Assembly: GCA_965649825.1 (NCBI GenBank)
Contig: OZ287705.1
Location: forward strand, 1-64,000
From: Penicillus capitatus
Lineage: Eukaryota > Plantae > Chlorophyta
DNA length: 64,000 bases
Reading direction: 5' to 3'
In this document: positions 8,721-60,662 of the stretch, piece by piece
How positions within the stretch are numbered: position 1 is the stretch's first letter
Layout of the letters: every line of letters begins with the position of its first letter
Notes under the pieces: model-generated
Database searches by the model: none
The model's input: the letters and a program-made list of their open reading frames with translations, nothing else
Told to the model about the DNA's origin: nothing
Made by a program: the position numbers and the translations under genes

Positions 8721-10421
8721 TCAAACGAGCTGCAAAGCACTCAAATGTTCTTGAATCGCTTCATTCGGCTCCACTTTCGCTTCCTTCATGTATTCGTGAA
8801 CTGTCTTCGCGTGTTCTGTGTCACTCGTCTTAGCACAGTGTGCCAACACAGCCTCATATGGGCCTTGGGTCGGCGTAACAGCACTGTCTTTCTTCACAGC
8901 CTTCTTCACATCCTCCAGCACCTGCATGGCGTCGTCCATACGGTCGTGGTCCAATGCGAGTCGAATCATGGACTCTGTCATCTTGGCAGATGGCCAACGA
9001 AACTCTTCCGTAAAACCCTTCCAGCACTGAAGTGCATGTTCCACATTGGATGCCTTGAGGCACATGGCAATCCATGTCATGTAGCCGCGATACGATAATG
9101 CGATGCTCAACGATTTCATCGTTTTCACCACCTCAGATACCTGTGTCAGAGCTTCGTCCTGCGAGTAAGTACCATTCTCCCACAAACGCTGAATGATCTC
9201 TATCTGTGCAGCGAAGTTCTCTCCGCGGCGTCCAGCGCCTTCCAAGTCGTTCAAAGGCAACTTCTTCAATAATTTTAATGCCTTGGTCAGATCTCCTTTC
9301 TTCTCGTAGAGATCTATGATGCCTCCGAATGTGACGTGGGTTGCTCTCAGTTTGAGCTCATTCATGCGATTGAAGCAGTAGGTAATGTGGGTCTCAAGCT
9401 CCTCGTCTGTCAGCTCCAAGAATAACAACGATCGGAAGACGAAATCAAATGAGGAAAGAGTGAGCATCACACCGCTGCTGACCGATTCCTTCAAATAGCC
9501 CAGCGCCTCATCCGACCGTCCCAGTTTGCCAGACAGCTTGATCAGAGGAACATAGGTAAACGATTGGGGTCTGACGTTCCTCGATTTCATCAAAGCCATT
9601 AAGTCCTTGCATTCTTGCAAGTACTCCTCGCCAGTGTCGCTGTCAACGTTTTCGGCATAGACATCCAACATGACATTGTAGTTACGCACATCTTTCACTG
9701 TAAATTTCTCCATCGTTTCATTAAATATCTGTTTCGCACGATCCACATCTTTCCCCCGGCCGCAGACAGTGATCAGTGAACGGTATGTCACTGGATCGGG
9801 CTTAATCTTGTAGTCTTCCTGCATCTTGTGGAATGCTTCGAATGCAGCATCGACTTCGCCGGTGCTTGCATAGGCATAGATGAGGGTATTGAAGATGTAG
9901 TTGCTTGGCGTCAACCCTTTTGCCACAATCTCGTCAAAAACCTGTTTTACCATGTCCAGGTTGTTCATCCGTGAGTATGTTTTCATAACATTCATATAGA
10001 TCCCAACATCGATCGTGACATCACGAGCCTTCATTTCTTCGAAGAGCTCCAGGACACGAGAGTAGGCGCGATCACGCATCAGGAGTCCCATTTCACGACT
10101 GTAGTCGGACGTGTGGTTTCGTGGCCGGCGTTTCTTGCGCATGAAATCGTCGTCCACCTCTTGATGTTCCTCTGGGGCGTCATGTAACCCGCGGCGTTGC
10201 ATCGCTCCCGTCCAGCCGAACGCGGTCTTGTCATCGAAGCGCATTAGCAAGCGGGATGGGCATCTGGGTGATGCAGGGTAAAAACGACTGACTGGCGAAA
10301 CAACAGATCGGGTCGGGGCGACGCCGTCGTTGGCGGAGAGCGTCGGTGCAACGGCGGAAAAACGCGAACGGAAAAGCCAACGCCCAACGTTGGCGTAGTT
10401 TTGTGCAGAGCGGCGCATCAT
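8721..10421 (-). CDS. P-type pentatricopeptide repeat protein, copy 1 (566 aa, ~12 repeats, Arg/Ser-rich N-terminal targeting peptide)
   Basis: Intronless ORF with tandem ~35-aa repeats such as DVGIYMNVMKTYSR, SNYIFNTLIYAYA..G.VD.AF.AF..M, DPVTYRSLITVCG. Confidence 0.95.
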   Translation of the reverse strand: MMRRSAQNYANVGRWLFRSRFSAVAPTLSANDGVAPTRSVVSPVSRFYPASPRCPSRLLMRFDDKTAFGWTGAMQRRGLHDAPEEHQEVDDDFMRKKRRPRNHTSDYSREMGLLMRDRAYSRVLELFEEMKARDVTIDVGIYMNVMKTYSRMNNLDMVKQVFDEIVAKGLTPSNYIFNTLIYAYASTGEVDAAFEAFHKMQEDYKIKPDPVTYRSLITVCGRGKDVDRAKQIFNETMEKFTVKDVRNYNVMLDVYAENVDSDTGEEYLQECKDLMALMKSRNVRPQSFTYVPLIKLSGKLGRSDEALGYLKESVSSGVMLTLSSFDFVFRSLLFLELTDEELETHITYCFNRMNELKLRATHVTFGGIIDLYEKKGDLTKALKLLKKLPLNDLEGAGRRGENFAAQIEIIQRLWENGTYSQDEALTQVSEVVKTMKSLSIALSYRGYMTWIAMCLKASNVEHALQCWKGFTEEFRWPSAKMTESMIRLALDHDRMDDAMQVLEDVKKAVKKDSAVTPTQGPYEAVLAHCAKTSDTEHAKTVHEYMKEAKVEPNEAIQEHLSALQLV

Positions 10422-10440
10422 CGGCGTTTCCTACGTCCTC

Positions 10441-10462
10441 CGTCAGACGTGACGTACGAAGG
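10441..10462. promoter_or_regulatory. Conserved CGTCAGACGTGACGTA(T/C)(A/G)AAGG element in the PPR/BRE1 divergent promoter
   Basis: TGACGT/ACGT-core motif (followed by TATAAA in copies 2-4) retained at 38437, 48443 and 60682. Confidence 0.45.
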
Positions 10463-10520
10463 CGATCTGCTGCAAATTGTTGTTCGATTATTTACCAACG
10501 TTTCTACGGTTCGGACGACG

Positions 10521-12962
10521 ATGAGCGAGCACAGGAGCTGCGGACAACAGATGAAAGTGCTGAAGATTCGGAAGAAGCCAGGACCGAAAACAGTTGAGGA
10601 CCAGAAGGCATAACTCGCACAGATAAAGCAGTTCTTCCTTAGAAAGCGCAGAAAGCCGGATGGCGTGACGCACAAGCCGCGGTCTCTGCTGCGCTTCGCG
10701 GATAGACGCAGCTGCACGAGTATGCGAACGAGATCGCCGACCGCGCTGATCATGCCGAGAGCCTCGCTGCGATGCCGGAGACTTCGCCGTTTCTCGATCC
10801 ACTTCTGACGAAGTTGATGTCATCGAGCGGTGAACGTACCAACGCGGAGGGGACGACGCAGTCGGAATCGAAACGCAGGTTTCGAGGATGGTGGGACGGT
10901 CTGCATTGTGTATTGGACAGGTCTGGCGAAGAGGAGATGGCAGCAGAGAACGATGCCGCAAGCAAGGCGATGCAGAATCTCTGTGTATGAACGTGCTGAT
11001 GCAGATCGAGATCGAAGAGCCGGATCACGAAATGAAAGACCATCAGAAGACACAGAAAACCCGAAACGTTTGCAGTTGGAGGCGAAGAGCGGTGTCGATT
11101 CTTGAGTGCGGGGAAACCAACTTCATCTCTCCTTACACGAAATAAGGACGAGACTGGTAGCTGAGTTGGGGGACGGAACGGAAGTGGTGTCGAAGCTCCG
11201 CGTAGATATGGAGGCCAAAGAAGAGGACAATATGTGGAGACCACTCTTCAACCTGGAAGAGTTGCCTTAGGTGCTACCAGTTGGTGGAAGGTTCCCAGAA
11301 TAGGCTGAAGGAGCTACAGCGTCGATCGAGAAAAACGAAGAAGCCTATCGACGCGGATCACGTCCGAGAGGCGAAGCCTGGACCATCTCTCAGGAGTACC
11401 AGAGTCTAGTGTCCGGTTTACAAGAGGTAGCGACTCGCCTCAGCAATCTAGTGGTGGGAACGCGTTGTACCTTGCGTCGACACGCTACTCATCTTGTGTG
11501 AGGTATAGTGGAATGCGGAACGTCTCAGAAAGGCACGGATAGAAACCATCGAGGCGGTCGTGCGGAAGAGAGCGGCAGAGAACCAGGTGGAACGTCCGAA
11601 TTCCTTCATCGAAGAATGCGAGGATGCAAAGCGTCGCTGCGTGTCCACGAAGAGAAGCTGTTGGAGGAGTGAGATGATCTACAGGCCTTCGTGGACACGA
11701 TGACGAAGTGCGACAGCATCGGCAAGAATCGCGAGGAAGCAGAATCCAGCCCAACGACCATAACACCGAGCTCTAGTTCTTTTCTTAAGAGAAAGATCGA
11801 CGAATTGGAGATCAAGTGCGAAGACAGCAGACTGAATGAAGTGGACAGTTCGCGAAGGAATAAGAGGTCGAGAGAGCGGCTAAACCAGCTGAACGTGGAA
11901 ATGGAGTAGATGAAGCGTACGAGCAAACATCGTGAAGCAGACTTAAGATCAGAAGCGACTCAATGGCTTCCTCCAAGGAAAAGTCTACAGCGGCAGGATG
12001 TCTATGGAGTAAGTTGGTTTTTGTGACAGATGTGCGAATAAAGAAAACAGTGCACGTGTATGCGAAGTCCCAAGTTCAGAATGAAGAGCCGATGAACGAA
12101 CTGTTAGGGGACGACACCACGATCGGGAATCTCCAACGAAAGAACGCCGAGGTGAAAGAGAAGCAGTGAGATAGCTTTTCGAGACGGCGGAGCATAGCTG
12201 CAGATCTCGAAACGCCTGGGAAAGGCGAAGTCATTCGCGGAGAATGTGGAGATCCTTACTAGATGCAGCGAGATGCACGCGCAGCGGCTGCTAAAGATCC
12301 GATCAGATTAAGCAGGTGGACTCGAGGAAACGAAGCGAAAGCTAACTAAAGCAAGTGCAGCGGAATCTCTCGCATCAGACTGACGGGCGGCGCATTTAGA
12401 CGAAGGATGAGATGCGAAAGCTCCAATCGAAGTCGAATGCCGAGCATAAGGACAACGAGAATACGAAAGAGGAGAACAATGCGTCGCAGCATCTAGTTAA
12501 AGAAGCCGAACATACGAAAGAGGAGCAACGAAGAACAGCCAAGATGCGAAATCGAGAGTTGCCTGGACGAACGCGTCAGGTGCAGCAGATGGAAGCCGAC
12601 GTGAATGTATCCCTTCTTCTTTGTTGAATCAGCTGTCTCCCTCATCCGCGATCTCCTGTGACAGGCATTTGGAGATCTGAAGCGCAAACTGCTATCAGGG
12701 AAGCCGACAGAGTGAGATGTGCATCAGGTGCAAAGAGACGGAGATGCTGCATTAAGAAATGGAGAGTCTGCGAAACGCAGTGACCTGCACCATCTGCTGC
12801 TCTCGACGCAAATCTGTGGTGCTGCAGAAGTGCAGCTGTCACATCACATTTCGATCGTCCTTTCGTCCGTACATCGCTGGAAACCCGACCTACGTTCACG
12901 ACCCTTCCTTCCGACCAAACCTTTCCAGCTTTCGACAGACCCAGTTTTTGCATAGTCTCTGA
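10521..12962 (+). pseudogene. BRE1: BRE1/HUB1 E3 ubiquitin ligase pseudogene (longest remnant)
   Basis: Coiled-coil fragments, SPFLDPLL, and a degenerate RING (ESLRNAVTCTICCSRRKSVVLQKC..H, distal Cys lost). TAA at ~10611 (GAA in copy 4) plus several further stops and frameshifts. Confidence 0.75.
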
Positions 12963-30051: not shown

Positions 30052-30799
30052 AGACGGCGGCCCTTTCCATCAGATCGCGAACGACAGCACTAAATGGCCT
30101 GGACGTGGGGAAGGATAACACAGCTGCACTGGGATATTTGTTGGATGGCGTTTCTGCAGCTCGAAAAGACTGAACTGCCGTTCTGAATCCATCGAAGTTG
30201 TCCAACCCACTGTCTGACCCTATTCGATCAATAATGCGGGATTCAGATGGCAATGATTTGCTTGTGACTGACATGTGCAATGATGAGCTGTGCGATTCGC
30301 GTTGTTTGTCCGTCTCAAAGAGTACCGACCATCCGCCAGCCGCAAAGGACGTCCAGATTGGAACAACGGAGAGCTGCAGCCACGCGTCGCGTCATCCAGC
30401 ATCCACTGCCCGACAAATGAAGTGGAAATCACAGAGATCCGAAAGCAAGGGACAAAGACATCTGCCTCTGGATGGTGAAACAGTGACGATCAGATGGTCT
30501 TCGGGGAAAACGTCACGGCCAGAGAAGATTCTCAGCAGAATGAAGGGCGACTGAGTGTTTTTCTGTTCGGCTGTTTCCCTTCTACGTGTCTTGTCGTTAC
30601 GGAGAGCATGCTTTCCGTGATCAGAATGCCCCATGCAATGGAAGAGACGAGGACATGCGTATACTTGCACCGATTCCCTCTGACGCGGACGTCTACGTCT
30701 CTCGTACACAATACAGGTCGAAACCGTCACGGGAGAACGAGGCAAGAAGACCAAAACGACCTGCACGCGTCTCGTCGTTAACTGCCGTCGACGAGACTT

Positions 30800-32047: not shown

Positions 32048-32407
32048 TACTGTACTTGACTACTATTACCGCGGCACTATGGCCTACTTATTCCTTTTAG
32101 CTCTGCAAGCCTTTTATACTTTGTTCATATCTGTAGAGTATTCGCAGCCATTGTCAGTAGCTTAGCCACAGTGACAGTGACAACATTATCGATAGCTTGC
32201 CTAGTTTGTGTGATAGTACGGTCGGTCTGTTTGCTCCGTTGGTCTCGCCTAATCCTGCAAAACGTGTAGAGGACTAAAGCAGCCGTGCATCCACAACCAC
32301 CTCCACCTCATGCATCCTGGATTTCCCAGCACAGGTTAGTGTCCCAACCGCCACATGCGTTGTCGCTACGTGGCACGTGTAAGTGGATGTCCGTCTTTAT
32401 CTAGGTT

Positions 32408-38417: not shown

Positions 38418-38436
38418 GGGCGTTTCTCACGTCCTC

Positions 38437-38545
38437 CGTCAGACGTGACGTATAAAGGGATCTGCCGAAGATGATTTCTTCGATTTTCTTACTAACGTTT
38501 CTACGGTTCGAACGACGATAAGCGCGCGAGCTGCGAAAGATGCAG
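38437..38545 (+). promoter_or_regulatory. Divergent promoter element plus a very short remnant of the BRE1 5' end
   Basis: CGTCAGACGTGACGTATAAAGGG...CTAACGTTTCTACGGTTCGAACGACGATAAG homologous to 10441-10530. Confidence 0.55.
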
Positions 38546-46029: not shown

Positions 46030-46623
46030 ACGTCGGTTCTTTGAAATGAACTTGTGTTTCGTTCACAGATGGATCTTCAAGAGTCACGAAACCTAGGACA
46101 AGAAGACAGTAATAGTCGTTCTTATCGTTTGATCTTCGTTGTAACACTTACGCGTCAGTGCGACAGATGGACGGCTGATTCTCCGCTGAACAATCTCCTC
46201 TGTTCACGTCATCAGCCAATCTCGCATCGGACATCGTGCACTAATGACTGCACGACAGTAGATCGTTGATTCTTCGCAGCTGTTCTTTACCCATCCCATT
46301 TTTGGTCCATCTCATTGTGAAGACCTGAAGCAAATCGTCAAACCATGGCTCTCATCCTTTCCGGTTTCTGTAATGCAGATCTATCCATCCTCGACAACAA
46401 CTGACGAATCCCCAGAAATCGAATGTTTTCATGACAAATGATCATCTGTCGTTTTTCCAGAGATGGACGAAATCTGAATGTGTTCTTCTCGACAGAGAGG
46501 TGTCTACGTATGTGTTATCCATCTATCGTTTACGCGACATATTAACCGACGCTCGTAACACACCAACGATTCCCTGCATGAAAATGTCACCGTTTTGTAA
46601 AAACGCCATCAAAATAGAACATC
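46030..46623. repeat. Conserved 3' flank of PPR cassette (gene X remnant), copy 3
   Basis: Colinear with 58360-58961 and, over its right part, with 8262-8720. Confidence 0.85.
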
Positions 46624-48420: not shown

Positions 48421-48524
48421 CGTTGGCGTTTCTTACGTCCACCGTCAGATGTGACGTATAAAGGCGAGCTGATGCTGACTACTCCTTCAGTTTTCTTGCT
48501 AACGTTTCTACGGTATTATCGAGG

Positions 48525-49190
48525 ATGAGCGCAGGAGCTGCGGAGCTGCGGATAGAAGTGCTGAATATCGGAACGAGAACGATCGGAGACGGTCGAGGAC
48601 CAGAGGGTCAAACTCGCACGGATAGAAACAATCGAGGCGGTCGTGCAGAAGAGAGCGGCAGAGAATCAAGCGGAATATGTGAATTCCGTCCGCCGTTGAA
48701 GAGTGGGAAGATGCCAAGCGTCGACTGCTTGCCCGTGAAGAGCAGTTTTGGAGGATCGAGATGATCTGCAGGTCTTCGTGGACGTGTTGATGACGTACGA
48801 CGGCATCAGCAACAATCGCGAGGAATCGGAATCCGTCGCTTGCGACTGCAACACCGAGCGCAAGAATTCCTCTCTGAAGAAAAAGGTCGAGGAGGTGGAG
48901 ATACCGTGCGAAGAGAGCAGATTGCAGAAGGAAGTAGACCATTCGCGAAGGAATACCAAAAAGCTGAGGGAGCAGCCGGACAGTTAAACGTGGATATGGA
49001 GGAGATAAAGCGCACGAGCAACAACCGCGAAGAAGACCTAGAAGAGCAGAAGAAACCCAATGGCTATCTTCAAGGAATATTTGACGTGAGAAAAATTTCC
49101 ACATAAAGACTGGTGATGTGACAGATGTGTAACTGTAGGAAACAGCACAAGCTTACGCGAAGTCCCAGGCTCAAAATAAAGAGCTCAAAA
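48525..49190 (+). pseudogene. BRE1: BRE1/HUB1 remnant with internal deletion, copy 3
   Basis: Homologous to 10521-10625 joined to ~11531-12080. Multiple stops and frameshifts. Confidence 0.7.
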
Positions 49191-50079
49191 AAGGAGTTGT
49201 GGCCTCACATCGGTGAGCCGTTAACGACGCGGAGCTCGACGCTGCGGGAACGAGACGGCTGAAACGCGCGAGCGCCGTAATGCTTACATTGCGTCAGAGG
49301 CGACAGTTGACTGTCATGCAGTCCCATCGTCCGACGCGACGTTTGCATACTGTGAACGTCGACCCGTCGGCCGAGTCCGAACCGGATGGCGAACCGCGTA
49401 GGAGGACTCGTCAGCAATGTTATTTACATAACTTAGACGATACAGCAGAACAGTTCTGTTTAAATACCCCGGTCATTGGTCTGTCACGTCGTTACGTAAG
49501 CCTCTTCTCAGGCCTCTCGTCATGCGTTCTCCAGTGATATTCTGCTGGCGTGGCGCCACAAGGACGGTTGGCGCAATAGCAGCGTCCTCTCGCCAGAAGA
49601 CCCGAGGCAACAGCGGGCACCTTCACATGGGCGCACCCGCATTCCTGCTGACGCAAACTCCGAGGTACTCTCGCTTCACCGGTTTGCTGCTTTCCCTTGC
49701 GGCTCTGACACTGACAGGCACATGAGCGGCGGCGGACAGCACAGGAGAGAAAACGCAGCGGAAGTCTTTTGTCTCTCGCTGTTCCGAAGTACGGCTTCCG
49801 TCTTCCGGCACGGCCTTCGGTCTTCGTTCTCTTCCGAGGCGGCGAGTCGCGCACAAGGCAGCGAGTCGGCGACAGACCCTCGGTCGCGCTTCGACACTCT
49901 GGGCGGCGAGTCGGCCCAGGCACGTGCACAGAACAACGCTCAGCCACCTCAGGGCGGCGAGCAGGCAACGCGCGGGGCGGGACTCGCAGACTCCTGGTGG
50001 ACGGCGCAGAGAAACGGGAAACGACGATGGTGCCGTGAGTCGGTGAAAGCCGCACTCACGTAGGCTCGCTCCGAAACCA

Positions 50080-50486: not shown

Positions 50487-51921
50487 TTGCAATTCGCTCT
50501 TGGAAAGAGACTTTGGTATTATCTTTGTAAAATCTTTGCTTTCCTTTCTATCACTCTGGCTGACGACGGCCATCACATTCGGCGAACAACAGTCCCTTAC
50601 CCTCCGCTCTACCCGACGTTCCAAGAGTCCTTGAGCCGTTTTCGGCAAGGCGAGCGCACAGAGCTGCTTCAGAAGGGTGCCGAGCGAGTGGTCCACAACG
50701 TCGGCCTATTCGATACGCGTCGCTGTTCCGAGGACGGGAGCGTTAACTTTGTGGTCAATCCCCTGGCAGATACTCCTTCTGTGGATCTCCGGGAGCGACA
50801 AGTCGAGGAGGAAGAACAACACGCCCCCCCACGAGAAGAAGAAGGTTCACCGAATCAACCAGAGAGCAACAACGGTCTTGATGGCTTCTTCGTCAGGACT
50901 GTCTGTCGCAGCGATGACGAAATCATCCAATGCTCGCGCAAACTTTATCCTTTGTAGGACAAGAACGCAAAGCCCTGTCACCAATGAACCTTCTCGGCTG
51001 CCGAATGAAAGCGGGAAGAATGCAGACTTGGTTTCGAGACACGTGTCAATGTCGATCGACGGTGTCAAACAATGTGTCTCGAAAATGGCGAACGTCGCAT
51101 TGTCGTGCTTGGATCGAGCTCTCTTTCAGGCTCCAGACATTAAGTAATTCCTTCGCGTTTCGAATCCATCTGCGTGACTTGACTATATACTGCGCATCCA
51201 CTGCCATCTCCATCTACAGAAGACTACCAGACAGCATGGGGCGCCACATCCTTCAGCCGTGAGGGCATCTCTGTCGCGTTCATTCAGATCATTCTCATAA
51301 TCGCTGCTCTGCGCACGAGCAGGCGACGCAATTGCGTCGCTGCCGAGCCAGACAGTCCTCATTATCTCGGCGAGGAGGACCGTTTCCGTCATGACGCTGC
51401 GGCCGAGGAGTACCGTCAACGCTATCTGCAGAGCCAAAGAAAACAAGTTCAGAGTGTCTTCGTCCTCCCGGCACTCGCCTTCGCGTCTCCTAGATCAGGT
51501 CCCTGTACAGAAGAGCACAGCACATGGCACAACGCCGAAAAGAATTCCACGATCGTCTCCATGCAGTGGACCGCTCGCAGCAGCGAGATGCTATACTGCG
51601 GCAACAGAACCGTATCCGCTCCAAGAACCAGAGCGGCGAGGGATTCGACATCACGACCCTCCGTGCTCTGAAAGGAGACGGAGCAGAGAGGAGCCGCAAA
51701 CTTGCCGAACACGTATCGACATGCGCACGCAATCGACCTCGCTCTCTATGCCTCCGTAGGACGCCAAGGAGAGGGAAAGATGCGAGAAACGCGCACAGAA
51801 TCTCTTTGACAAGAATCGTTCGACGGACTTCGACATCATTACCGGGAATCCGTCAAAGTTTGTCGCGGGGCTGCCGCACCGAATGCTGTCGGATGCCGAA
51901 CACGAATCACACTTTCTTTGA
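50487..51921 (+). CDS. Spliced hypothetical protein, charged and helical with repeated FDI(I/T)T motifs; 5' end uncertain
   Basis: Exons splice in frame to AQRRKEFHDRLHAVDRSQQRDAILRQQNRIRSKNQSGEGFDITTL...AEH|DAKERERCEKRAQNLFDKNRSTDFDIITGNP...FL*. Confidence 0.5.
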
Positions 51922-52991
51922 TTCTTTCCACTTGGTCTTCCACACGATCCCGTCCAGTTCCCACTCCTCCCCTTCTCCGACGGCCACGTAGATCCGCAGC
52001 TCCGTCAGCATCACCGATTTCTCTTTGGCTTCCGACGCAGCGAAAAGCGACCGACCGCCATCGGGCAGACGCTCGTAGTATGTCCCTTCACGCAGTTATT
52101 GCTCTATCTGTGACCTCCTCTCTTCTGTGGTCACACCTAATCGCGATTTGCACTTCTTCGGATCGTCCTGTGGGACGAGTCCGATCGTGAGGCCTTCCGC
52201 GCCGAACCGGATTCCGAACGCTTCTTTGTCGATCACTGCCAGTCCCGGTCCGCCCACCTCACGCATCACACTCACATTCAACCGGAATGCAGAACCTCAC
52301 ACTTTCGGCAGTTTGATAGCTGGTTTGGACGTGTCTCCGTCTGTCCATGTAAACAGAAATGCGGCATTGGAATCGCGGTTTTCGCCCAAACCGATCCACC
52401 CTAACACATTTTCTCCTCACTGAACCTTTTCGCTTGCCTCTGGGATTGTAGCCGCCGAAGACGGCACCGCCTGGCGATCTCGCCACCACTACTGCCGCCC
52501 CAAATCCATCAACGCGTTGATGAAACGCTCCGTAGTTCCATCCATGCACCTCCGCATCGTACGCCAATCTACCACACGTTTACGCACGCAGTTCGACATT
52601 TGAGAACGAAACACCGAAGGTTGGCCTTTTCCAGACGCGTTTGAGCCAACAGGGGACGAAAGCACGCCATCTCCGGCGTATCTGATTCCACAGGGCTGGC
52701 TATCTCCGTCGTCGTCGCCGGAAACAACTGTCGCCCTCTTTCCTCTCCAATCCTACATCTCCATTTTTCTCACCTCCTCTGCCGGCCACGCGAGGCCTCG
52801 CACCTCTTTAGTCCAAACGGTTCGGGATCCTGCAGCGCCTTCTTTCCAAAGATTCCTGCAAAGAGCTTCTCCACGATGTCCGGTTCGTCTTCCGCCGAAC
52901 ATCGCCGACGCCACAATGATCCACCTCTGAGCGACGGACGTCCGACGCGACTTCTCGGCAACAACGGCGATCGCGTCGCAGGCCGCGCCAT
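51907..52991 (-). CDS. TLDc-domain protein with a probable plastid transit peptide
   Basis: HGWNYGAFHQRVDGFGAAVVVARSPGGAVFGGYNPRGWIG..SNAAFLF..GIRFG..LTI..ELRIYV. N-terminus is Arg/Ser/Pro-rich. Confidence 0.85.
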
Positions 52992-53683
52992 TGTTCGACT
53001 TCTTCAAGTGTTCTTATGAATTGTAATGAAATCATCAGGTAAGGCTCAAGGATCGATGCGCTGCTCATGCGCTTCATCCTTGATCTACTAGTGCTGGCAG
53101 ACGACACTGTATAGTATGAGATTCGCTGCATACATACCAACAAAACGGGCTTCTTCCAGTCACCTCCGTGAAACAGAAGTGCAATCTTTTACGCAGGCAA
53201 CAATCTCAAATTGGGTAAAAAAGACAGTGAACAATAATGGGCTGGCTGTGCTCTATCGATTGTCATCAACCGATCGAACGAACGAACGAACGAACGACGT
53301 TCTAAGTTCATCGAGCACATGTTTCAAAAAAAGGATCAGGGATATGGATGACCTCCTGTTTCGCCTGCACCCATACTAAAACAAAAAAGCGACACACAAG
53401 TGCAGCAACAAGGACGACAGAGACCAAAACTTGGGTACTGCATACAGAGAAGGATAACATAAAAATCCAAAATTGACTTTCCCCCGGCTCTCCCAGACAA
53501 GAATGCGCATTTCAGCTTGGTCTGTGTTTGCTAGATGTACAAATACAGGAAATAAGACTGACTACACAACGAGGGACGATGTCGCCCTTCCCCTAGAGGC
53601 TGCTGGATTTCAAGAGGTCGCAGAAATCGTACGGATCCAATCCGACAATCTTCCTCGTGGTCTTCTTCGGCAGGGCCGACATC

Positions 53684-55621
53684 ATGGAGGATGTCGACTC
53701 CGTCGGCGTCGAACCGCCTAAGAGACGAGAGAGTCCGCCGTCGTCGCAGAAGGACGTCTCGTTACCGGAGGAGGATGCCGTCGGACGATGCATCATCGTC
53801 GCGGTGGGAGTCTTCGTCCAGAAGGCCGGTCCGAATTCTTCGACGGCTGGACACGAACGACATTGTGCGCTGCGCGTCGCGTCTCTAATGCGCTCACCGT
53901 CTTCTTCTGCACGGAGACTGAAGTCATTGAAGCTTGGGGACGCGGAGAGCTGTCTCGGACTGGAGTGCTTCGTCGAGAGCGGTTCCGGACAGCGAGGGTC
54001 GCGAGGTCCTCCGGCGCCTGAGTCGTGGGACAGGCTTTTGGCCAATCTGCGGACGAACGAGGTCATGGTGTGTGGGGAGACGTATGTGCGTTCGACTTCC
54101 AGTTCGTTTGAAATGGAGCAGAAGGATAGATGGAGTGCGTACGTGCGCGTGCGCTTTCGCCGAGATGTGTCACATCACGCAACACCATCGGCTCGTTCGT
54201 CGAACAGTACGAGATGGCCGAGCCGTTCGCTCCCGGGCAGCTGCTCAACGAGGGACGCTATAGAATCGTCCGCGAAATTAACCGTAAGACGGACGGCGTC
54301 CACTGTGTCGAGACTGTCGAGGCGTGCAGGCGGAGCGACAGCTGTCGTCTACGAGGCGGAAGACAGCGCCAGAGGCAGCGGTCGCGTTGCCCTCAAGGTC
54401 ACGTCGTACAGTACAGCCGAGAAGGCGAGGTCGACGCATGCGTGCCCGTGCGAAGGTGATGAATCTCGCGGAGCACCAGCAGAGTCTCTCGTTCAAGATG
54501 GTCAAACGCGAAGTGTGGTCTCACTCTTATCGAAAACGACGGTTGACATTGACTCCTGTGGTGACAGGTTGAGTACGCCAGCTCCGTACGTCACCCCAAC
54601 ATCGTTCGGCTGCTCGACGTCTTCGCCGATGGGGACCACCTCATCCTCTCCGTCAGTCGCCTGTCCTGGTCGCCAGAATCGCTGACGGCGTGTTCGTTTG
54701 ATCGCAGTGGGAGCTGATCGAGGGGAAGGACCTGCTGGACCTGCTGGAAGACGTGGGGGGCCGCATGCCGGAGGACATGGCCGCCTTCTTCGTCCATCTC
54801 ATCCTCAGGGGCGTCTCCTTCATGCACGAGAAGGCATACTGCCATCGCGATCTGAAGCCGGAGAACTGCATGGTGGCGAAGAAGACGCAGAATCTGAAGA
54901 TCGTCGACTTCGGGCTGTCAAAGCACCTCGACCTGGCCAACACGCTCGGGCACGGTTTCGATCGCCCACGCATCTGTGCCGAACGCGTCTCGTTCTAGGG
55001 TCGGCACGCCGGATTACATGGCGCCCGAGATGCTGGGGGAAGCGGACGAGCCGGAACCGAAGGAGGGACCCAGATACGATGCGACCGCCGTCGACGTGTG
55101 GAGCATAGGCGTTACGCTCTACCTCCTGGTCGCGGGGGCCTACCCCTTCGAAGTGCGCATCGCAGTCGGGCGAGGGGTTCAGCGTCATCTCCGCTGTGCT
55201 GCTCTAGGATCCAGAGCATCCAAGCAGTGTGGGTCACACCGTGGCCAACATCAAGAGGAACTCGATAAGGCCCTTTCCGTCCGATGTCTCGTCGGAGTGT
55301 CGATCCCTGATCCGCTCTCTCCTGTCCCCGTCTGCTAGGAACCGTCCCCGTCTCAGAGAGATCTCCGAGAATAAATGGCTGTGCAAGAACGCCAAATCCT
55401 ACGCGATCAAGATACGAAGACCAGAGCTCTTTGTGCCATCGTTGCGTCAGAGAGTCCGATTCCGTGATCGTTCGCCCAGCATCTCGTCGAAGGGACAAGA
55501 ATCGCCTGGACTGGTGATGGATGACGTCGAAGAGATCCCTCGTCCGTCGGGGTGCTTCGGAGGACATCGCATCCTCCGACGTCTCTCTTCTCTTCTCGGT
55601 CGATTGGCGGCGAAGAAATAA
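53684..55621 (+). CDS. Ser/Thr protein kinase, CAMK group (SnRK2-like), with all catalytic motifs
   Basis: [57 protein letters not shown]-terminal extension of ~130 aa. Confidence 0.85.
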
Positions 55622-57831
55622 CAGCGAGTCTGCCAATCCCTTCGATCGCGACGCTTAGAATTTCATTACTGAACAGTTAGCTGTGCTGTAAAGCGATGTT
55701 TTTTCATTGCCTTGCCAACAGTCTCCCTCAGAATCGCAAGGAAACCACATCACCTAGAAATCGACGGCCACAGGTGCGGATTCACCTAATTCTGTCTTGT
55801 GCATGATCCGGTCACGTCATGAGCGTCGTGCAGGAGTGCGTGTTACCCGTCGGATAAGTGATCCTGTCTCGTCGCGCAGACCAAGCGCACGCCCTTTTTG
55901 TCTATCTCAATCGCTTTATTGCAGGACACGTGTTTTTTATCCAGATAACGGCCTCCGCAATCGTTTCCTTCCAGACAGCACGCCGTTACAAAGGAACACT
56001 TCCGGAAGCGGAGATCGTGATTGATCGAAAAGATAGGTCTCGGTTGGGAGACGAAACAAAACACTCAACAAACGCAACAGATTCAAAGATCACTTCGTTG
56101 CTGGTCCTCTTGTATCCAGTGCGGCAGCGCGCTACAGGGCTCTCACATTTATTGATAGTGCGTCGGCTTTAGGACACTGCAGGCGGGTCCAGTTCTGTGC
56201 GAGATGAGATCAGACGTCCGATCTGAAAATCTCAGTTACATTTGCGTGCCACAGGATTCAAAACTGCGAGCACTTACTTCTCCATCGACAACCCGGACGG
56301 CGTCGGTCATCCGGACCCGAGAAAAGGAGAAAAAGAGGAATCCTCAACATGGGTCGTATTTCGCATCGAAACGGTATCCAGAAATGTAAAGTGTCCGCAC
56401 CTGTGCACCCCGTTCCTTTGAGCAGGAAACAAGAGGCACGCGAATTCAGGCTTTACCTCGAATCGAACTTGGCGTAGGTGATCGACTTGTTTACGTGGAC
56501 CGCTTCGTCTTGCCGTTCACCTCGGGAGATCGACGCCTGTGCGCGGAGAACTCTACGACCGCTGACCGGTGGGGCTCTGTCTGTCCCTCTTCGATACGCT
56601 ACACTTCGAGAGACGTCAGCCCAGAGTTGACGACGCCATTAGACGCGTCGATAGTATCTTCTCTCATAACGCGTTTGTGCGTTCGCGAGCGTTCGTCTGT
56701 CTGTCTGTCCATGCATCGCCAGTCGCTGTCATCTTCAATTCGAACGATGACGATTTACGGGGTAGTCGACGTCTGTCACCTCTGGAGTTACGAAGGTAAC
56801 CAAGTACGCCCAACAAAACAACATCGCAAAAGTTCATTGTAATGACTGTCCGGTCACCGTCAAGATAGGACTGACTACCCTCACAAGCACAGACTCTGTT
56901 GGGCGTCTCATAGTTTGATTGATGATCAATGTCACGTCAGACCACGACTGATACGTTGTTTATTCACACGTCCATTCACACTCCCAGTCCATCCCGTCGA
57001 TGCAGACGCACCAGCATCCCGTTAACTAGCGCTGCCAGCCGTAGAGAGTGTACCCGATGGATATGATGAAGAAGGACTCGACGGCTCTGCTTCTTCGCGA
57101 GTTGCCTCGTCCGTTTGTTCCGCCTCTCCATCGGAAGCAATGGCCGGCCTTTCTAAAGCACTAGCCCCTAGAGCAAAACCACGATGACTTAACGATGCTG
57201 GTTCTAGAGAGAGAGGCTCAACAGACCTCTGAGTCGGGGTGTCTCGATGTTCTCTGCATAGACAGTCCGCACAACAGGAAAGCCCAATTCGACGTCCGGC
57301 TCAGGTCGTATCCTGAACTCGGCTGATGCCATCCATGCCTTGATCTTTTCGGAAGGTGTTCGTTGCCTGCCGTTTATCGTGACGATTTCTTTCTGATGAC
57401 ACACGGACGATGTTGTCATCGCATGTCTGGCTGACAATGGCGTCGGACCTTTAATTCATGCTTCGTTGGATGCTTCTTCTTCTTGGGGTAACAAAACCAA
57501 AGATACGCGAGGATTAGCAGATAAAGACATAATTGAGCTAGAATCGAGGCCAGGACAAGGAAGCCAGACGCCATCCATAAAGTACCGGCGAAACACGTTA
57601 TTCACGAGGAGTCTACAGAAAACGTCTCGAATGCGCCTATCGGAGAATGGCGCTGTCGGGTACCGACTTACGTGTCCTTCTGCCTTAGGAGACATGCAGC
57701 TTCACACGATGCTCCTCGTTTCACTCAGGCGTCCGTGGGACACGATTCGTATTCGGCCGACGTGTCGTATTCATCGCCGTATAAGACGTCCCGTACCTGC
57801 ATCAGCCGTCGGCGATGTGATTCGCCAAAAG

Positions 57832-57978
57832 ATGTCGGTCAGTCGGCATACGAGCCTGGGCGATATCAAGATCAAGATCTTCTGCGAGGAGACGCTGCTC
57901 GCGACAGAGACCTTCCTTGCGCTATGTGCCAGTGGATACCACGACGGGACGCTGTTCCACGACAATCCTATCGCCTAG
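57832..57978 (+). pseudogene. PPIL3: Cyclophilin PPIL3-like N-terminal fragment
   Basis: MSVSRHTSLGDIKIKIFCEETLLATETFLALCASGYHDGTLFH then stop. Matches the PPIL3 N-terminus pattern MSVTLHT..GDIKIE.FCE..P...ENFLALCAS.YY.G..FH. Confidence 0.8.
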
Positions 57979-57991: not shown

Positions 57992-58112
57992 GACTCGCAG
58001 TTAAGCATGATGCGAAGATGCGACTCCGCCTCTTTCTTGTCAATCCCCTTGTGATCTGCGTAGTCGTGCGCTTGCTCCTCCGTGATCTTTCCAACCGCGA
58101 AGTACTGACTCT
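57992..58112 (-). pseudogene. METH: Cobalamin-dependent methionine synthase extreme C-terminal fragment
   Basis: SQYFAVGKITEEQAHDYADHKGIDKKEAESHLRIMLN matches the MetH C-terminus S.YFAVGKI..DQV.DYA.RKG.....AE.WL...LN. No upstream MetH exons found. Confidence 0.8.
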
Positions 58113-58359
58113 GCGTTAAGTCCATCAGCGTCTGGCAGACGTTATTCTTCGTCTCGCGAGGAAGATGTTTGCTCGACCTACGGCAGGCCGTGACGATTGT
58201 GGCAGACGAATCCAGACAAATCGATCACAGATGTAATGACGACGGCCTTTTCTCAGGAGAACGCTCAAGGTATCCTCTATGGAGCTTCACTTATTTCTTC
58301 GATGGCATAGTGTTGTTTCGTCTTTCTCTCGCAAAGGATAACAATCGCAAGAGGTAGAC

Positions 58360-58961
58360 GTCGGTGCTACGAAACGAACCTTTGTTTTTCGTTACGGATG
58401 GATCTTCAAGATTCGCAAAACGTCTGGCAGTAAAACAGTGATATCTTTTCTTATCTGTCATTCTTCGTTATAGTCCTTTTCCTTATCAGTACGTCAGACG
58501 AACGATTTGTTCTCCGCTGAAAAATCTTGTTGACTGGATGTGTCTACCATCAGCCAATCTCGCATCGGACACCGTGCACTAATGACTGCACGACTGTAGA
58601 TCGTTGATTCTTCGCAGCTGTTCTTTACCCATCCCATTTTTGGTCCATCTCATTGTGAAGACCTGAAGCAAATCGTCAAACCATGGATTTTATTCTTTCC
58701 CGGTTTCTGTAATGCAGATCTATCCATCCTCGACAACAACTGACGAATCCCCAGAAATCGGATGTTTTCATGACAAATGACCGTCTGTCTTTTTTCCAGA
58801 GATGGACGGAATCTGAACGTGTTCGTCTCGACAGAGAGGTGTCTACGTATGTATTATCCATCTATCGTCCACGCAACATATTAACCAATGCGCGTAACAC
58901 ACTAACGATTCCCTGCATTAAAATGTCACTGTTTTTTTAAGAACAGCCAAAATAGAACATC
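58360..58961. repeat. Conserved 3' flank of PPR cassette (gene X remnant), copy 4
   Basis: Colinear with 46030-46623. Confidence 0.85.
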
Positions 58962-60662
58962 TCAAATTAGCTGCAAAGCACTCAAATGTTCTTGAATCGC
59001 ATCGTTCGGTTTCACTTTCGCTTCCTTCATGTATTCGTGAACTGTCTTCGCGTGTTCTGTGTCACTCGTCTTAGCACAGTGTGCCAACACCGCTTCATAC
59101 GGGCCTTGGGTCGGCGTAATCTCTTCATTCCTTTGCATAGCGTAACGCACAGTCTTCAGCACCTGCACAGCATAGTCCACCTGGTCATGATCCAGTGCGA
59201 GCCGGATCATGGACTGTGTCATCCCAGCAGATGGCCAATCGTGCTTTCCCGTAAAATCAAGCCAGCACTGAAGCGCAAATTTGACATCGGATGCCTTGAG
59301 GCACATGGCAAACCATATCCTGTAGCCACGTAACGTCAATACGACGCGTAACGATTTCATCGTTATCACCACCTCAGATACTTTCGTCATAGCCTCTTCC
59401 TGAGAATAGGCGCCATTCTCCCACAGACGCTGAACAATCTCTAGCTGTGCAGCAATGTTATTTGCATTACGGCCAGCTCCATCCATGTCTTTTTTAGACA
59501 GCTTCGACAAAAATTCCAACGCCTTGCTCATATCTCCTTTTCTCTCGAAGAGTTGCACAATGTCTTCGAATATGATATGGGATGGTTCCAGCTTGAGCTC
59601 CTTCATGCGGTCAAGACAGTAAACAATATGGGTCTCGAGCTCCTCGTCTGTCATCTCCAAGTCCGCCAGCGATCGAAAAACGTAATCAAACGCGGTAAGA
59701 TTGGGGCCCGCATCGATGCTGACAGATTCCTTCAAGTAATCCAGCGCTTCGTCCAACCGTCCCAGCTTGCCATACAGTTTGATCAGAGGCACATAAGTGA
59801 ACGATTCGGGTCTGATATTCTTCGATCGCATCAATGCCATTAAGTCCTTGCACTCCTGCAGGTACGTCTCGCCAGTGTCACTGTCGACGTTTTCGGCATA
59901 GACCTCCAACATGACATTGAAGCTTCGCACATCGTTAGCTCCAAATTTCTCGACCAGTTCATCAAAAGTCTCTTTCGCACGATTCGCGTCTTTCCTACTG
60001 TTGCACACACTGATCAGCGAACGATACGACGCTGGATCGGGTTCAATCGCATAGTCCTTCTGCATCGTGTGAAAGGTCTCGAATGCAGCGTCAACGTCAC
60101 CAGTGTTTGTATACGCGTAGATGAGGGTATTGAACAGGTACTTGTCTGGTTTGATCCCTGACGTCACGAGATCGTCAAAAACCCCTTTCACCATGTTTAT
60201 ATTATTCATCCGTGAATAGGTTTTCATGACCGCTATGTAGATCCCAACGTCGATACTCACACCACGAGATTTCATTTCTTCGAAAAGATCCAGGACGCGA
60301 GAGTAGGAGCGTTCATGCATCAGGCGTCGCATTTCACGACCGTAATCAGCTGTCTTTCTGAGTAGAGGTGGTTTCTTTCGCATTAAGTTCTCCAGCTCTA
60401 GGTTTTGCTCTTCTGGGGCGGCATGAAACCAGCGGTACTGGTACGCGCTTGTCCAGCACAACGCCATTTCGGCGCCTGCGCATTTTGGCAGGAGGGACGA
60501 GTATCTGTGTAGGGTAGCGCAAAGAGGATCGACTGGCGGAATGGCAGATCGCGTCGGGGCAGCGCCTTCGTTGGCGAAAGGCGTTGGCGGAACGGCAAAG
60601 AAACGTGAACGAAAGAGCCAACGCCCGACGTCGGCGTAGTTTCGCGCAGAGCGGCGCATCAT
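58962..60662 (-). CDS. P-type PPR protein, copy 4 (566 aa)
   Basis: Intronless and colinear with copies 1-3; N-terminus nearly identical to copy 2. Confidence 0.95.
   Translation of the reverse strand: MMRRSARNYADVGRWLFRSRFFAVPPTPFANEGAAPTRSAIPPVDPLCATLHRYSSLLPKCAGAEMALCWTSAYQYRWFHAAPEEQNLELENLMRKKPPLLRKTADYGREMRRLMHERSYSRVLDLFEEMKSRGVSIDVGIYIAVMKTYSRMNNINMVKGVFDDLVTSGIKPDKYLFNTLIYAYTNTGDVDAAFETFHTMQKDYAIEPDPASYRSLISVCNSRKDANRAKETFDELVEKFGANDVRSFNVMLEVYAENVDSDTGETYLQECKDLMALMRSKNIRPESFTYVPLIKLYGKLGRLDEALDYLKESVSIDAGPNLTAFDYVFRSLADLEMTDEELETHIVYCLDRMKELKLEPSHIIFEDIVQLFERKGDMSKALEFLSKLSKKDMDGAGRNANNIAAQLEIVQRLWENGAYSQEEAMTKVSEVVITMKSLRVVLTLRGYRIWFAMCLKASDVKFALQCWLDFTGKHDWPSAGMTQSMIRLALDHDQVDYAVQVLKTVRYAMQRNEEITPTQGPYEAVLAHCAKTSDTEHAKTVHEYMKEAKVKPNDAIQEHLSALQLI

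Follow-up and report, generated by a model that had tools for sequence, protein, structure and literature searches.

A clustered PPR gene family in the green alga Penicillus capitatus, apparently lineage-specific, constrained and shuffled among copies

The 64,000-nucleotide window analysed here (Penicillus capitatus, contig OZ287705.1, positions 1 to 64,000) carries exactly four intact, intronless PPR genes, all on the minus strand and encoding 561-598 aa. They probably belong to a functional, lineage-specific nuclear family that is kept under constraint and shuffled among its copies, an evolutionary mode resembling that of the RFL and NCL genes. The four uninterrupted ORFs described in an earlier note on this DNA were recovered alike by ORF prediction, by Pfam, whose PPR models matched all four proteins strongly (E 1e-23 to 1e-32), and by tblastn, which located only the same four copies in the window and no PPR pseudogene fragments there.

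Table 1. Coordinates of the PPR genes and associated features in the window.
Feature	Coordinates	Strand	Basis	Remarks
PPR copy 1	8721..10421	-	ORF + Pfam	566 aa; intronless ORF including stop
PPR copy 2	36732..38417	-	ORF + Pfam	561 aa
PPR copy 3	46624..48420	-	ORF + Pfam	598 aa; 92% aa identity with copy 1
PPR copy 4	58962..60662	-	ORF + Pfam	566 aa
Tandem duplication in copy 3	47549..47748	-		99 bp, in frame; 2.0 copies, 97% match
5' element, copy 1	10434..10455	-		ACGTCACRTCTGACG(G)AGGACG; 13-34 nt upstream of ATG
5' element, copy 2	38430..38451	-		ACGTCACRTCTGACG
5' element, copy 3	48436..48457	-		ACGTCACRTCTGACG, 1 mismatch
5' element, copy 4	60675..60696	-		ACGTCACRTCTGACG
3' element, copy 1	8667..8688	-		AGTGACATTTWMATGCAGGGAA; 33-55 nt past stop codon
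3' element, copy 2	36680..36701	-		AGTGACATTTWMATGCAGGGAA
3' element, copy 3	46570..46591	-		AGTGACATTTWMATGCAGGGAA
3' element, copy 4	58909..58930	-		AGTGACATTTWMATGCAGGGAA
3' flank, copy 1	8262..8720	-		non-coding, common to units; most divergent of four (K 0.29-0.33 to rest)
3' flank, copy 2	36284..36731	-	self-BLAST	common to units
3' flank, copy 3	46030..46623	-		common to units; 88-96% identity with flanks of copies 2 and 4
3' flank, copy 4	58358..58961	-	self-BLAST	common to units
Insertion, copy 1 only	10625..11533			0.9 kb; separates PPR 5' flank from BRE1 remnant
BRE1-like pseudogene fragment at copy 1	11735..12960	+		divergent from copy 1; coiled coil and degenerate RING start near 12677-12960
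BRE1-like remnant at copy 3	48822..49350	+		adjoins copy 3
BRE1-like remnant at copy 4	60861..61718	+		adjoins copy 4
Block A	27380..35334			flanks copy 2; 93-97% identical to paralogous segment L004, 78.6% to related genome L001
Block B	51045..56502			between copies 3 and 4; 94% to L004 over 52918-55410, 78.5% to L001

Each predicted protein opens with a disordered presequence of ~100 residues, rich in Arg, Ser, Ala and Pro, whose start forms an amphipathic helix. Behind it come 12 P-class PPR helical hairpins, and a short conserved helix closes the C-terminus. In the AF2 model of copy 1 (pLDDT 79), residues 1-98 are disordered and 12 hairpins span residues 104-553. The common Arg-rich N-terminal sequence noticed earlier, MMRRSA.NYA.VGRWLFRSRF, is indeed kept across the copies, copy 3 beginning with one M only. 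The tandem duplication in copy 3 adds one 33-aa helical unit. Pfam detected no RAP or other catalytic domain in the PPR proteins. The top Foldseek matches of the model were designer PPRs, PPR10 and mitoribosomal PPRs (E 1e-13 to 1e-10), and PEP-associated PPR proteins were also matched.

The placement of this DNA in an alga agrees with a plant-type ERF/AP2 domain (E=4e-23 to AtERF1) and a LeuRS closest to those of chlorophytes (60-64% identity). When copy number was followed beyond the window on a public 512-kb contig, the four genes proved to be part of a looser array of at least nine intact copies that spreads across about 231 kb of a single contig; distances to copies beyond the window are approximate, since the window differs from the public contig by 0.45% (99.55% identity). 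About 31 proteins of the family and all ten CDSs examined (10/10) are full length at dS near 0.55. The family has a single 50% representative among 1.84 billion proteins, and the next-best proteins outside it are 21-29% identical. In the family tree, paralogues cluster by genome, with the exception of one basal orthologous pair. By these comparisons the family appears to be lineage-specific. Membership of the angiosperm RFL clade was rejected because the best plant matches are generic PPRs with 21-26% identity.

Could the four copies stem from faulty assembly, or be collapsed or alternative haplotypes? Most clusters of the family have a partner at least 90% identical on another contig, and the incomplete identity of the window to the public contig implies that haplotypes or strains are present in the data. 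However, the four copies lie on one contig with unique genes between them, their proteins differ by 8-35%, their flanks and indels are distinct, and the public contig codes for all four proteins without a difference. This explanation is hardly credible, and collapsed haplotypes, a possibility raised by the earlier note, were rejected on the grounds of the diverged proteins, the distinct flanks and the single contig.

A repeated unit of 2.3-3.4 kb surrounds each PPR gene, with self-BLAST limits, which reproduce those of the earlier note, at 8262-10625 plus 11533-12556, 36284-38545, 46030-49184 and 58358-61718; further copies of the insertion that splits the first unit were found neither in the window nor in the compared loci. 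The unit had been described as a fourfold cassette in which a PPR gene is co-duplicated with a BRE1 gene and a second gene, X. The four PPR units hold, and a BRE1-like remnant lies on the plus strand, divergent from the PPR gene, in three of the four; it is absent at copy 2. Gene X was rejected, since the shared 3' flank of 430-600 nt contains no conserved ORF and many of its indels are not multiples of three. This flank reads best as 3' UTR or intergenic DNA.

Like the E3 ubiquitin ligases BRE1, RNF20-RNF40 and HUB1, the BRE1-like sequence combines a coiled coil with a RING at its C-terminal end; unlike them, it is an interrupted C-terminal fragment, and none of the remnants in the window gave a Pfam match. 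The BRE1 identity is weak for the window remnants, with a PDB phmmer search reaching only E about 0.5. It becomes significant beyond the window, where the RING of human BRE1A is matched at E=2e-7 by a paralogous copy in better condition, aligning as ...CCxxRKKxxVLxKCxHxFCxxCxxxRxxTRxRxC.... Stops and frameshifts occur throughout all of the remnants and RING cysteines are lost, so a working gene was rejected in favour of a pseudogene. The claim that both neighbours are broken in every copy thus stands for the three BRE1 remnants and lapses for X, which is not a confirmed gene. That only the PPR survives is weak evidence, because only the C-terminal fragment of BRE1 is present, it is broken in every copy examined, and it was probably dead on arrival.

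The constraint on the PPR genes was assessed from indels and substitutions. Copy pairs differ by 0-2 indels in the CDS, all multiples of three, whereas their 430-nt 3' flanks show 9-10 indels, mostly frame-breaking. In simulation, the chance of remaining stop-free at 10% substitution was <0.001. NG86 omega was 0.37-0.52 at dS 0.37-0.63, and maximum likelihood under M0 gave an omega of 0.63 with omega=1 rejected (2dlnL=76.8). Collectively, these values indicate that selection holds the PPR ORFs open. The genes are nonetheless fast-evolving, as had been claimed: the adjacent single-copy GCFC gene, which has the same GC3, shows dS 0.52 and omega 0.13 between the two related genomes, and the PPR dN of 0.21-0.29 is 3-4x that of GCFC at equal dS. 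The codon model assigned about 45% of sites to omega near 0.2, about half to a nearly neutral class and about 6% to omega near 3. Averaged over the gene, omega is below 1. M2a was preferred to M1a across the 10 CDSs (2dlnL=36.9), and when each segment was given its own tree the comparison was nominally significant in three of four (p = 0.053, 0.001, 0.026 and 0.039); these tests used a home-written codon model with NEB posteriors on recombining sequences. Codon-model tests in such a setting are known to give inflated false positives.

Conserved elements flank the coding sequences. The 5' element ACGTCACRTCTGACG is a 15-nt palindromic sequence with inverted TGACG half-sites. One instance lies upstream of each copy, those in the related genome and the basal copy (47% aa identity) among them, and none was found away from PPR copies, a hint that the copies may be co-regulated. 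TGTAA, the usual poly(A) signal of chlorophytes, is missing from most PPR 3' flanks, each of which in the window carries the 3' element AGTGACATTTWMATGCAGGGAA.

Trees of different parts of the units disagree. In the CDS tree, copies 1 and 3 form a pair (dS 0.06), whereas the 3' flank of copy 3 pairs with those of copies 2 and 4 (K 0.11-0.13, versus 0.29 to copy 1). Between copies 2 and 4, identity reaches 99% over -120 to +100 but falls to 73-77% in mid-gene, and a run test for recombination gave p=0.002 and p=0.009. In the C-terminal 46 codons, dS is 0.08-0.31 inside the window versus 0.74-1.0 to the related genome. Furthermore, the 8-kb Block A closely matches L004, which lies about 27 kb beyond the window, but the enclosed PPR gene is only 75% identical (dS 0.55). 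The discordant trees, the run test and Block A with its enclosed PPR all support the earlier description of the genes as recombining, and we conclude, from these patterns of similarity, that the PPR copies recombine.

The PPR genes may instead be passengers in a duplication-prone region, their redundant copies drifting under relaxed constraint while weak purifying or dosage selection retains them, with the signal of positive selection a gene-conversion artefact. The region is indeed a patchwork of PPR-unrelated duplications, including Blocks A and B as well as 538-1489 with 44608-45559 (98%) and 23721-25540 with 62018-63839 (85%). Roughly half of all codons are compatible with omega=1, and the youngest PPR pair has an omega of 0.64, with 16 non-synonymous versus 3 synonymous changes over residues 251-520. 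Yet the examined CDSs and the family proteins are all full length at dS near 0.55, no PPR pseudogene fragments were found although the co-duplicated BRE1 decayed independently in each copy, the likelihood-ratio test was nominally significant in most segments with their own trees, and the cis-elements are conserved. We regard the passenger explanation as unlikely.

The sites with omega near 3 fall mostly in the inter-repeat loops (position 33) and at helix-a positions 1, 2 and 6. In published PPR structures, rather than the model used here, the start of helix a and the preceding loop form the RNA-facing edge. Code positions 5 and 35 have omega near 0.75-0.9 with no significant excess of entropy (P=0.09), and the pairs m03 N/D, m04 R/D, m10 K/R-S and m12 E/N are the same in every paralogue. 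Modular RNA recognition cannot be taken for granted, because the residues at position 5 are mostly non-canonical (M, R, V, D, G, A or E) and canonical PPR-code pairs are limited to motif 3 (N/D) plus a few others in some paralogues. The same residues, together with the mitoribosomal and PEP-associated Foldseek matches, would suit PPR-fold scaffolds that are not sequence-specific binders, perhaps subunits of organellar ribosomes or of complex assembly, whose solenoid would contact proteins or structured RNA and whose paralogues would be isoforms. Structural subunits are normally single-copy and slow-evolving, and the elevated PPR dN and the numerous diverged copies make a scaffold role improbable.

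An RFL-like arms race, in which selfish or deleterious RNAs of organelles (or viruses) are suppressed by a diversifying array and new specificities come from cassette exchange, would account for the clustering, the species-specific clades with loss of 1:1 orthology, the recombination and change in repeat number, the rapidly changing motif positions, and a PPR cassette far more diverged than its near-identical scaffold. Against this, the canonical specificity positions 5 and 35 are not the hypervariable ones, omega over whole genes stays below 1, recombination could distort the likelihood-ratio test, and nothing indicates viral RNA. We regard an arms race as possible but rather unlikely.

A constrained and shuffled family is the reading we prefer. 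Angiosperm RFL genes, as summarised in PMC8321540, are clustered, recombining and fast-evolving P-class PPRs. The algal genes share with them the P-class repeats, the N-terminal presequence, about 12 repeats, the genomic clustering, the grouping of paralogues by genome with orthology lost between related genomes, the gene conversion or recombination with repeat-number change, and a raised dN in which only a minor share of sites has omega >1. They differ in standing outside the monophyletic RFL clade, in their mostly non-canonical position 5, and in varying at loop 33 and helix-a positions 1, 2 and 6 rather than at the 2/5/35 code triad, so that the likeness to RFL genes proposed earlier fails at code positions 5 and 35. 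The conserved PPR proteins of chlorophytes, of which Chlamydomonas has about 14 (e.g. MCA1, MRL1 and PPR7; nuclear-encoded organellar RNA factors; PMC8635915), belong to the same superfamily but are mostly single-copy and conserved across green algae, unlike this multi-copy, clustered family, whose relatives outside its own lineage reach no more than about 29% identity. By analogy, the nearest functional counterpart in algae would be the NCL (NCC-like) OPR-RAP cluster on chromosome 15 of Chlamydomonas reinhardtii, which diversifies rapidly by recurrent duplication (PMC8226300; PMC8635915); an analogous fast-diversifying cluster is therefore already on record for an alga. Both are green-algal, lineage-specific clusters of helical-repeat genes, and NCL products are organelle-directed RNA-binding proteins. 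NCL proteins, however, are built from 38-40-aa OPR repeats and carry a RAP domain at the C-terminus, instead of PPRs without RAP, and the cluster belongs to a different lineage and holds at least 32 genes, versus at least nine here.

The array grew by nested segmental duplications, some inverted, of an ancestral unit in which a PPR gene, its promoter-proximal palindromic element and its 3' UTR were joined to a BRE1 fragment that was already dead. Sequence has also passed among copies through gene conversion or ectopic recombination, by which entire cassettes were swapped between nearly identical scaffolds and the 5' and 3' ends were homogenised. An intragenic duplication gave one copy an additional repeat. 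The cluster seems to behave like RFL or Chlamydomonas NCL genes. Its proteins may be imported into mitochondria or plastids and bind organellar RNAs there, and duplication, exchange and substitution together would yield paralogues with differing binding surfaces.

The four uninterrupted PPR ORFs of 561-598 aa claimed in the earlier note were recovered by ORF listing and by translation. All four were identified by Pfam, with scores of 81-111 bits for PPR_2 (PF13041; cut-off 30) and 72-105 bits for PPR (PF01535; cut-off 25), and PPR_3 was also far over its cut-off in 4/4 copies. With copy 1 as the query, tblastn returned exactly four sites in the window, which are the four ORFs, and no degraded fifth copy was detected there. 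Protein identity was 92% between copies 1 and 3, 73% between copies 2 and 4, and approximately 65% for the remaining pairs. Copy 3 is longer because an in-frame tandem duplication provides one more 33-residue helical unit. Self-BLAST placed the limits of the repeated unit where the earlier note had put them: the unit comprises the ORF together with 430-600 nt of downstream and 120-200 nt of upstream flank, and a further upstream block is common to the units of three copies. None of the four units is surrounded by terminal inverted repeats, and transposon capture of the Pack-MULE-like kind was rejected on this ground. No RNA genes were found in the window by ARAGORN or by Rfam at the gathering threshold.

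Positions of the PPR genes, of the family members on the 512-kb contig and of the shared upstream element
Feature	Position (nt; in the window unless stated)	Position on 512-kb contig	Strand	Remark
PPR copy 1	8721-10421	about 96.7 kb	-	uninterrupted ORF, 566 aa
PPR copy 2	36732-38417	about 124.7 kb	-	uninterrupted ORF, 561 aa
PPR copy 3	46624-48420	about 134.6 kb	-	uninterrupted ORF, 598 aa
Tandem duplication in copy 3	47549-47748			in-frame, 99 bp, 97% match
PPR copy 4	58962-60662	about 147.0 kb	-	uninterrupted ORF, 566 aa
ACGTCACRTCTGACG element	10434-10455, 38430-38451, 48436-48457, 60675-60696		-	
ACGTCACRTCTGACG element in L001, L004, L005 and L006	about 9964-9981			loci outside the window
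Basal paralogue P0178		26.9 kb	+	
P0006		179.5 kb	-	
P0172		213.1 kb	+	
P0170		232.4 kb	+	
P0013		255.9 kb	+	

The upstream block is oriented divergently to the PPR gene (+ strand) and translates as coiled-coil-like segments, including '...VTCTICCSRRKSVVLQKCSCH...' at copy 1. It is found at copies 1, 3 and 4 and is missing at copy 2; at copy 1, a 0.9-kb insertion (10625-11533) parts it from the PPR gene. The blocks of copies 1 and 4 gave no Pfam match in any of the three + strand frames, and BRE1A, BRE1B and Bre1 made up six of the eight best PDB sequence matches of the window block, at E values of about 0.5-5. A better-preserved copy of the block outside the window (8578-8817 of L005, the segment around paralogue P0013) matched the BRE1A RING at E=2e-7, so the label of BRE1 is correct. 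None of the flanking remnants carries, in an intact frame, the coiled coil and C-terminal C3HC4 RING of a BRE1 E3 ligase, and each copy has stops and frameshifts of its own. Since only the C-terminal part of the BRE1 gene is represented, the block most likely arose as a partial, already dead duplicate. The broken BRE1 neighbour described earlier for four cassettes thus kept its label and its broken state in all copies, and was withdrawn for copy 2. The second co-duplicated neighbour (X) was not found; the shared 3' flank has no conserved ORF and is rich in 1-2 nt indels. No BRE1 similarity was found upstream of the basal family member (locus L006); an intact BRE1 gene as its neighbour was rejected on this ground, and the remnant joined the unit in the expanded clade only. 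An ORF upstream of this paralogue (L006 8132-8395, - strand) reads 'MLLVFFVSALMHEVVVIVPLKF...' and is presumably similar to the C-terminal portion of an MBOAT/DGAT1-type acyltransferase.

In the AF2 model (pLDDT 79 overall, >85 over most of residues 104-566), residues 1-98 are disordered with a short N-terminal helix and are followed by 12 hairpins (104-553) and a terminal helix. The model and Foldseek agree on the right-handed alpha-solenoid of the PPR superfamily, with PPR10 and designer PPRs as top matches (Foldseek probability 1.00) and PEP- and mitoribosome-associated PPRs also among them; the predicted fold suggests that the proteins bind RNA. Motifs of 35-44 aa, a 13-aa helix at the protein end and the lack of an E/E+/DYW extension assign the proteins to the P class, and no Pfam match to a DYW or E-domain was found in the four copies. 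The first 60 residues contain 9-11 R+K versus 1-3 D+E and an amphipathic helix (muH 0.67-0.77), a presequence-like N-terminus that points to import into an organelle. In the related genome, P0016, P0017, P0019 and P0020 are called as 483-498 aa proteins that start at an internal 'MQLRGFHAA' and do not include the conserved MRRSARNYA presequence; these short calls could be a gene-caller artefact or a real loss of the targeting region.

The DSSP helix starts were used as the repeat register because they place Y/F at position 4 and N178/D209 at positions 5/35 of motif 3. In this register, most repeats do not show the canonical PPR code (N/T/S at 5 with D/N/S/T at 35). Canonical pairs occurred consistently in motif 3 (N/D) and in some paralogues in motifs 1, 2 and 5; position 5 of the remaining motifs is M, R, V, D, G, A, K or E. 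The pairs invariant in 22/22 paralogues are N/D in motif 3, R/D in motif 4, K/R-S in motif 10 and E/N in motif 12.

A search of 5.8 billion proteins yielded 22 family clusters (47-92% identity), none of them from outside these assemblies, and beyond them generic PPRs only (19-28% identity). In a profile search of 1.84 billion representatives, the family collapsed to one 50% representative, and the best colinear protein outside it showed 28-29% identity. Nine intact copies were mapped to the 512-kb contig, within 231 kb. The NJ tree pairs the basal paralogue with the related-genome orthologue, and every other copy groups by genome. Between the blocks of the related genome (ERZ26696514) that are 78.6% identical to window 29435-35345 and 51045-56502, one PPR gene is present where the window has copies 2 and 3.

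The window was 99.55% identical to the ENA metagenome contig ERZ25074695 ctg340382 (512,039 bp), on which the same four PPR proteins are encoded. With its clustered SNPs, it is a haplotype or strain variant of that contig, and a second haplotype or strain is suggested in which identical tracts alternate with tracts that are 2-3% diverged. Over window 1-20421, there were 87 mismatches and 5 gaps, almost all at 16.9-20.4 kb, the kinase region. Almost all family clusters outside the window have a second member at least 90% identical on another contig; these partners link the 512-kb contig with contigs of 296, 21.4, 21.6 and 60 kb, and contigs of 1.80 Mb, 1.31 Mb and 171 kb with contigs of 1.23 and 1.15 Mb. 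The four window copies have no such partner on another contig. Hemizygosity of this stretch, its missing assembly in the other haplotype, or alleles more than 10% different would each account for this.

Recombination among the PPR copies was upheld by a conflict between the CDS and flank trees and by a Sawyer-type run test (copies 1-3, p=0.002; copies 2-4, p=0.009). Copies 1 and 3 are 94-100% identical in the CDS and paired in the CDS tree; the 3' flank of copy 3 is 88-96% identical to those of copies 2 and 4 and only 70-76% identical to that of copy 1. Copies 2 and 4 show 99% identity from -120 to +100 and 73-77% thereafter. In the last 46 codons, dS was 0.08-0.31 among the window copies versus 0.74-1.0 to the related genome, and this low divergence within the window indicates concerted evolution of the 3' end. 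Compared with L004, a paralogous segment approximately 27 kb beyond the window, window 27380-35334 and 52918-55410 were 93-97% and 94% identical, respectively, and the PPR enclosed by the L004-like blocks was only 75% identical (dS 0.55). A diverged PPR in a near-identical scaffold may possibly reflect ectopic exchange that replaced whole cassettes; it is also possible that the scaffold was homogenised and the PPRs were not. The segment around P0013 (L005) is inverted and colinear with the window from 29.5 to 8.7 kb, except for the stretch at 12.8-19.8 kb, which is missing from it.

Copy pairs differ in the CDS (1.7 kb) by 0-2 indels, each of them a multiple of three in length, and in the 430-nt 3' flank by 9-10 indels, nearly all frame-breaking. 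In a simulation, a stop-free ORF was left in <1/1000 trials at 10% per-site random substitution. Pairwise Nei-Gojobori estimates for the PPR genes were dS 0.37-0.63 and omega 0.37-0.52 (dS 0.06 and omega 0.64 for the youngest pair). The adjacent single-copy gene GCFC gave dS 0.52 and omega 0.13 between the two genomes; by this comparison, the PPRs date from roughly the time when the two genomes split, and their protein sequence changes 3-4 times faster. GC3 was 0.58-0.61 for the PPRs and 0.60 for GCFC.

Site classes were estimated with a home-written Goldman-Yang-type codon model (F3x4, NJ topology, 10 CDSs; not PAML). Under M0, omega was 0.63 and omega = 1 was rejected (2dlnL = 76.8), which disposes of the neutral evolution of the PPR CDSs that the earlier note had considered. 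M1a placed 45% of sites at omega 0.18, and M2a placed 6% of sites at omega 3.1 (2dlnL = 36.9 vs M1a, a recombination-sensitive value). Because recombination inflates such tests, the M1a/M2a comparison was rerun with a separate tree for each of four segments, giving p = 0.053, 0.0011, 0.026 and 0.039; the evidence for a candidate positively selected site class is suggestive, not conclusive. Posterior-mean omega, from naive empirical Bayes site posteriors, peaked at positions 33 (1.46), 1 (1.34), 31 (1.28) and 2 (1.27), and was 0.87 and 0.93 at code positions 5 and 35. Pooled omega was 0.75 for code positions, 0.34 for helices and 0.53 for loops. Hypervariability at positions 5/35 was not significant: entropy at the 24 code positions was 1.30 versus a domain mean of 1.10 (P=0.09). 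The diversifying signal, if real, would fall on the loop and the beginning of helix a rather than on the classical code pair. As for the diversifying array kept by selection that had been proposed, the maintenance of the ORFs held, and its diversification reduces to the candidate class at omega of about 3, located off 5/35. We infer functional diversification among the paralogues. Collectively, the PPR family of this chlorophyte is lineage-specific, clustered, recombining and held by selection, and purifying selection on it is relaxed but clear.

Two short elements accompany the genes. A palindrome, ACGTCACRTCTGACG, of 15-22 nt with two inverted TGACG half-sites, lies 13-34 nt upstream of the ATG and occurs exactly once per copy in the four window copies and in all copies fetched, including those of the related genome; the basal paralogue, at 47% protein identity, has it too. 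Neither the rest of the window nor the PPR-less locus contains a further site. Its half-sites resemble bZIP/as-1-type sites, or the palindrome could form a hairpin with a 5-bp stem. The second element, AGTGACATTTWMATGCAGGGAA, is located 33-55 nt past the stop in the expanded clade only. Conservation of the two elements exceeds that of the coding sequence, and they speak for an expression of the family that is maintained and probably coordinated. The 3' flanks show no conserved TGTAA, the chlorophyte poly(A) signal, and the UTR ends therefore gain no support from it.

The assignment of the host to the green algae agreed with a plant-type ERF/AP2 domain exon at 14447-14707 (+; AtERF1 match, E=4e-23) and with the LeuRS of a syntenic contig of the related genome (ERZ26696514), which is closest to Tetraselmis, Flechtneria, Gonium, Chlorella, Raphidocelis and Apatococcus (only 60-64% identity). 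The chlorophyte thus has no close relative among sequenced species. The GCFC protein search gave one Caulerpa match (39% identity), and named matches of faster-evolving proteins came from Caulerpa lentillifera only; a bryopsidalean or ulvophyte affinity is faintly hinted at. The ERF/AP2 exon adjoins a reticulon-like gene on the + strand (about 15494-16251) and, on the - strand, a protein-kinase exon (about 18433-18966). A left-edge segment of approximately 3.2 kb, with no content recognisable by Pfam, is duplicated between PPR copies 2 and 3: 538-1489 and 44608-45559 are 98% identical over 952 bp, 42387-44374 matches the region just left of the window, and the rest is 87-92% identical. A 1.8-kb direct repeat (23721-25540 and 62018-63839, 85% identity) has a third copy at L005 2683-3585 (77% identity). 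Just beyond the repeated 3' flank of copy 4, an ORF fragment at about 57850-57978 (+), '...KIKIFCEETLLATETFLALCASGYHDGTLFHDNPIA', presumably represents the beginning of an exon for a cyclophilin-type peptidyl-prolyl isomerase.

Fast-evolving PPR clusters are treated as an angiosperm peculiarity linked to cytoplasmic male sterility. The evolutionary mode of the present family matches that of the restorer-of-fertility-like (RFL) genes of angiosperms, as compared here (PMC8321540), in that RFL-type clustering and the loss of 1:1 orthologues between related genomes are both seen. As judged on identity and the chlorophyte host, the family lies outside the RFL clade: its nearest land-plant proteins are generic PPRs at 19-23% identity (about 21% for the best plant relatives), such as the orthologue of At5g02860. 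RFL genes are marked by diversifying selection on the RNA-specifying residues 2, 5 and 35; the omega signal here, if real, would be highest at positions 33 and 1, with position 2 also raised. RFL proteins work in mitochondria, on mitochondrial transcripts or CMS ORFs, and the counterpart seen here is the presequence-like N-terminus. The mode also matches that of the NCL OPR-RAP cluster of Chlamydomonas, itself an alga (PMC8226300, PMC8635915). NCL proteins combine OPR repeats with a C-terminal RAP, whereas only PPR/TPR-type repeats and no RAP were found here by Pfam; the family does not belong to the NCL/OPR-RAP proteins. Chlorophytes are generally regarded as PPR-poor and OPR-rich, with 14 PPRs versus >120 OPRs in Chlamydomonas (PMC8635915), in line with the small number expected earlier. 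No comparable green-algal PPR cluster was found described in the literature searched, although an earlier mention is possible; the claim that such a system is undescribed in algae stands for PPR clusters in that literature and is weakened by the matching mode known for NCL.

The idea that the array polices organellar or viral RNA, selfish transcripts included, found no support in the data. The chlorophyte array could be a convergent RFL-like nuclear-organelle conflict module, a reading that we consider unlikely. Under this reading, whole PPR cassettes, each with its promoter element, CDS and 3' UTR, would be swapped among near-identical scaffolds to give new RNA-binding surfaces, which would track fast-changing elements of the organelles (for example mobile introns, free-standing ORFs or chimeric transcripts); RNA would be recognised partly via the non-canonical positions 1, 2, 6 and 33 rather than the land-plant 5/35 code. 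An algal PPR array that recombines and is partly under positive selection would mean that the evolution of organellar RNA factors by birth and death with cassette shuffling had an independent, PPR-based origin outside land plants, in parallel with the OPR-based NCL cluster. The family would also provide a compact natural experiment, with at least nine paralogues, a common cis-element and a BRE1 pseudogene as a built-in neutral control. Together, these could serve to test RNA recognition by non-canonical PPR repeats and, for lineages that lack male sterility, whether such arrays are driven by coevolution of nucleus and organelle.
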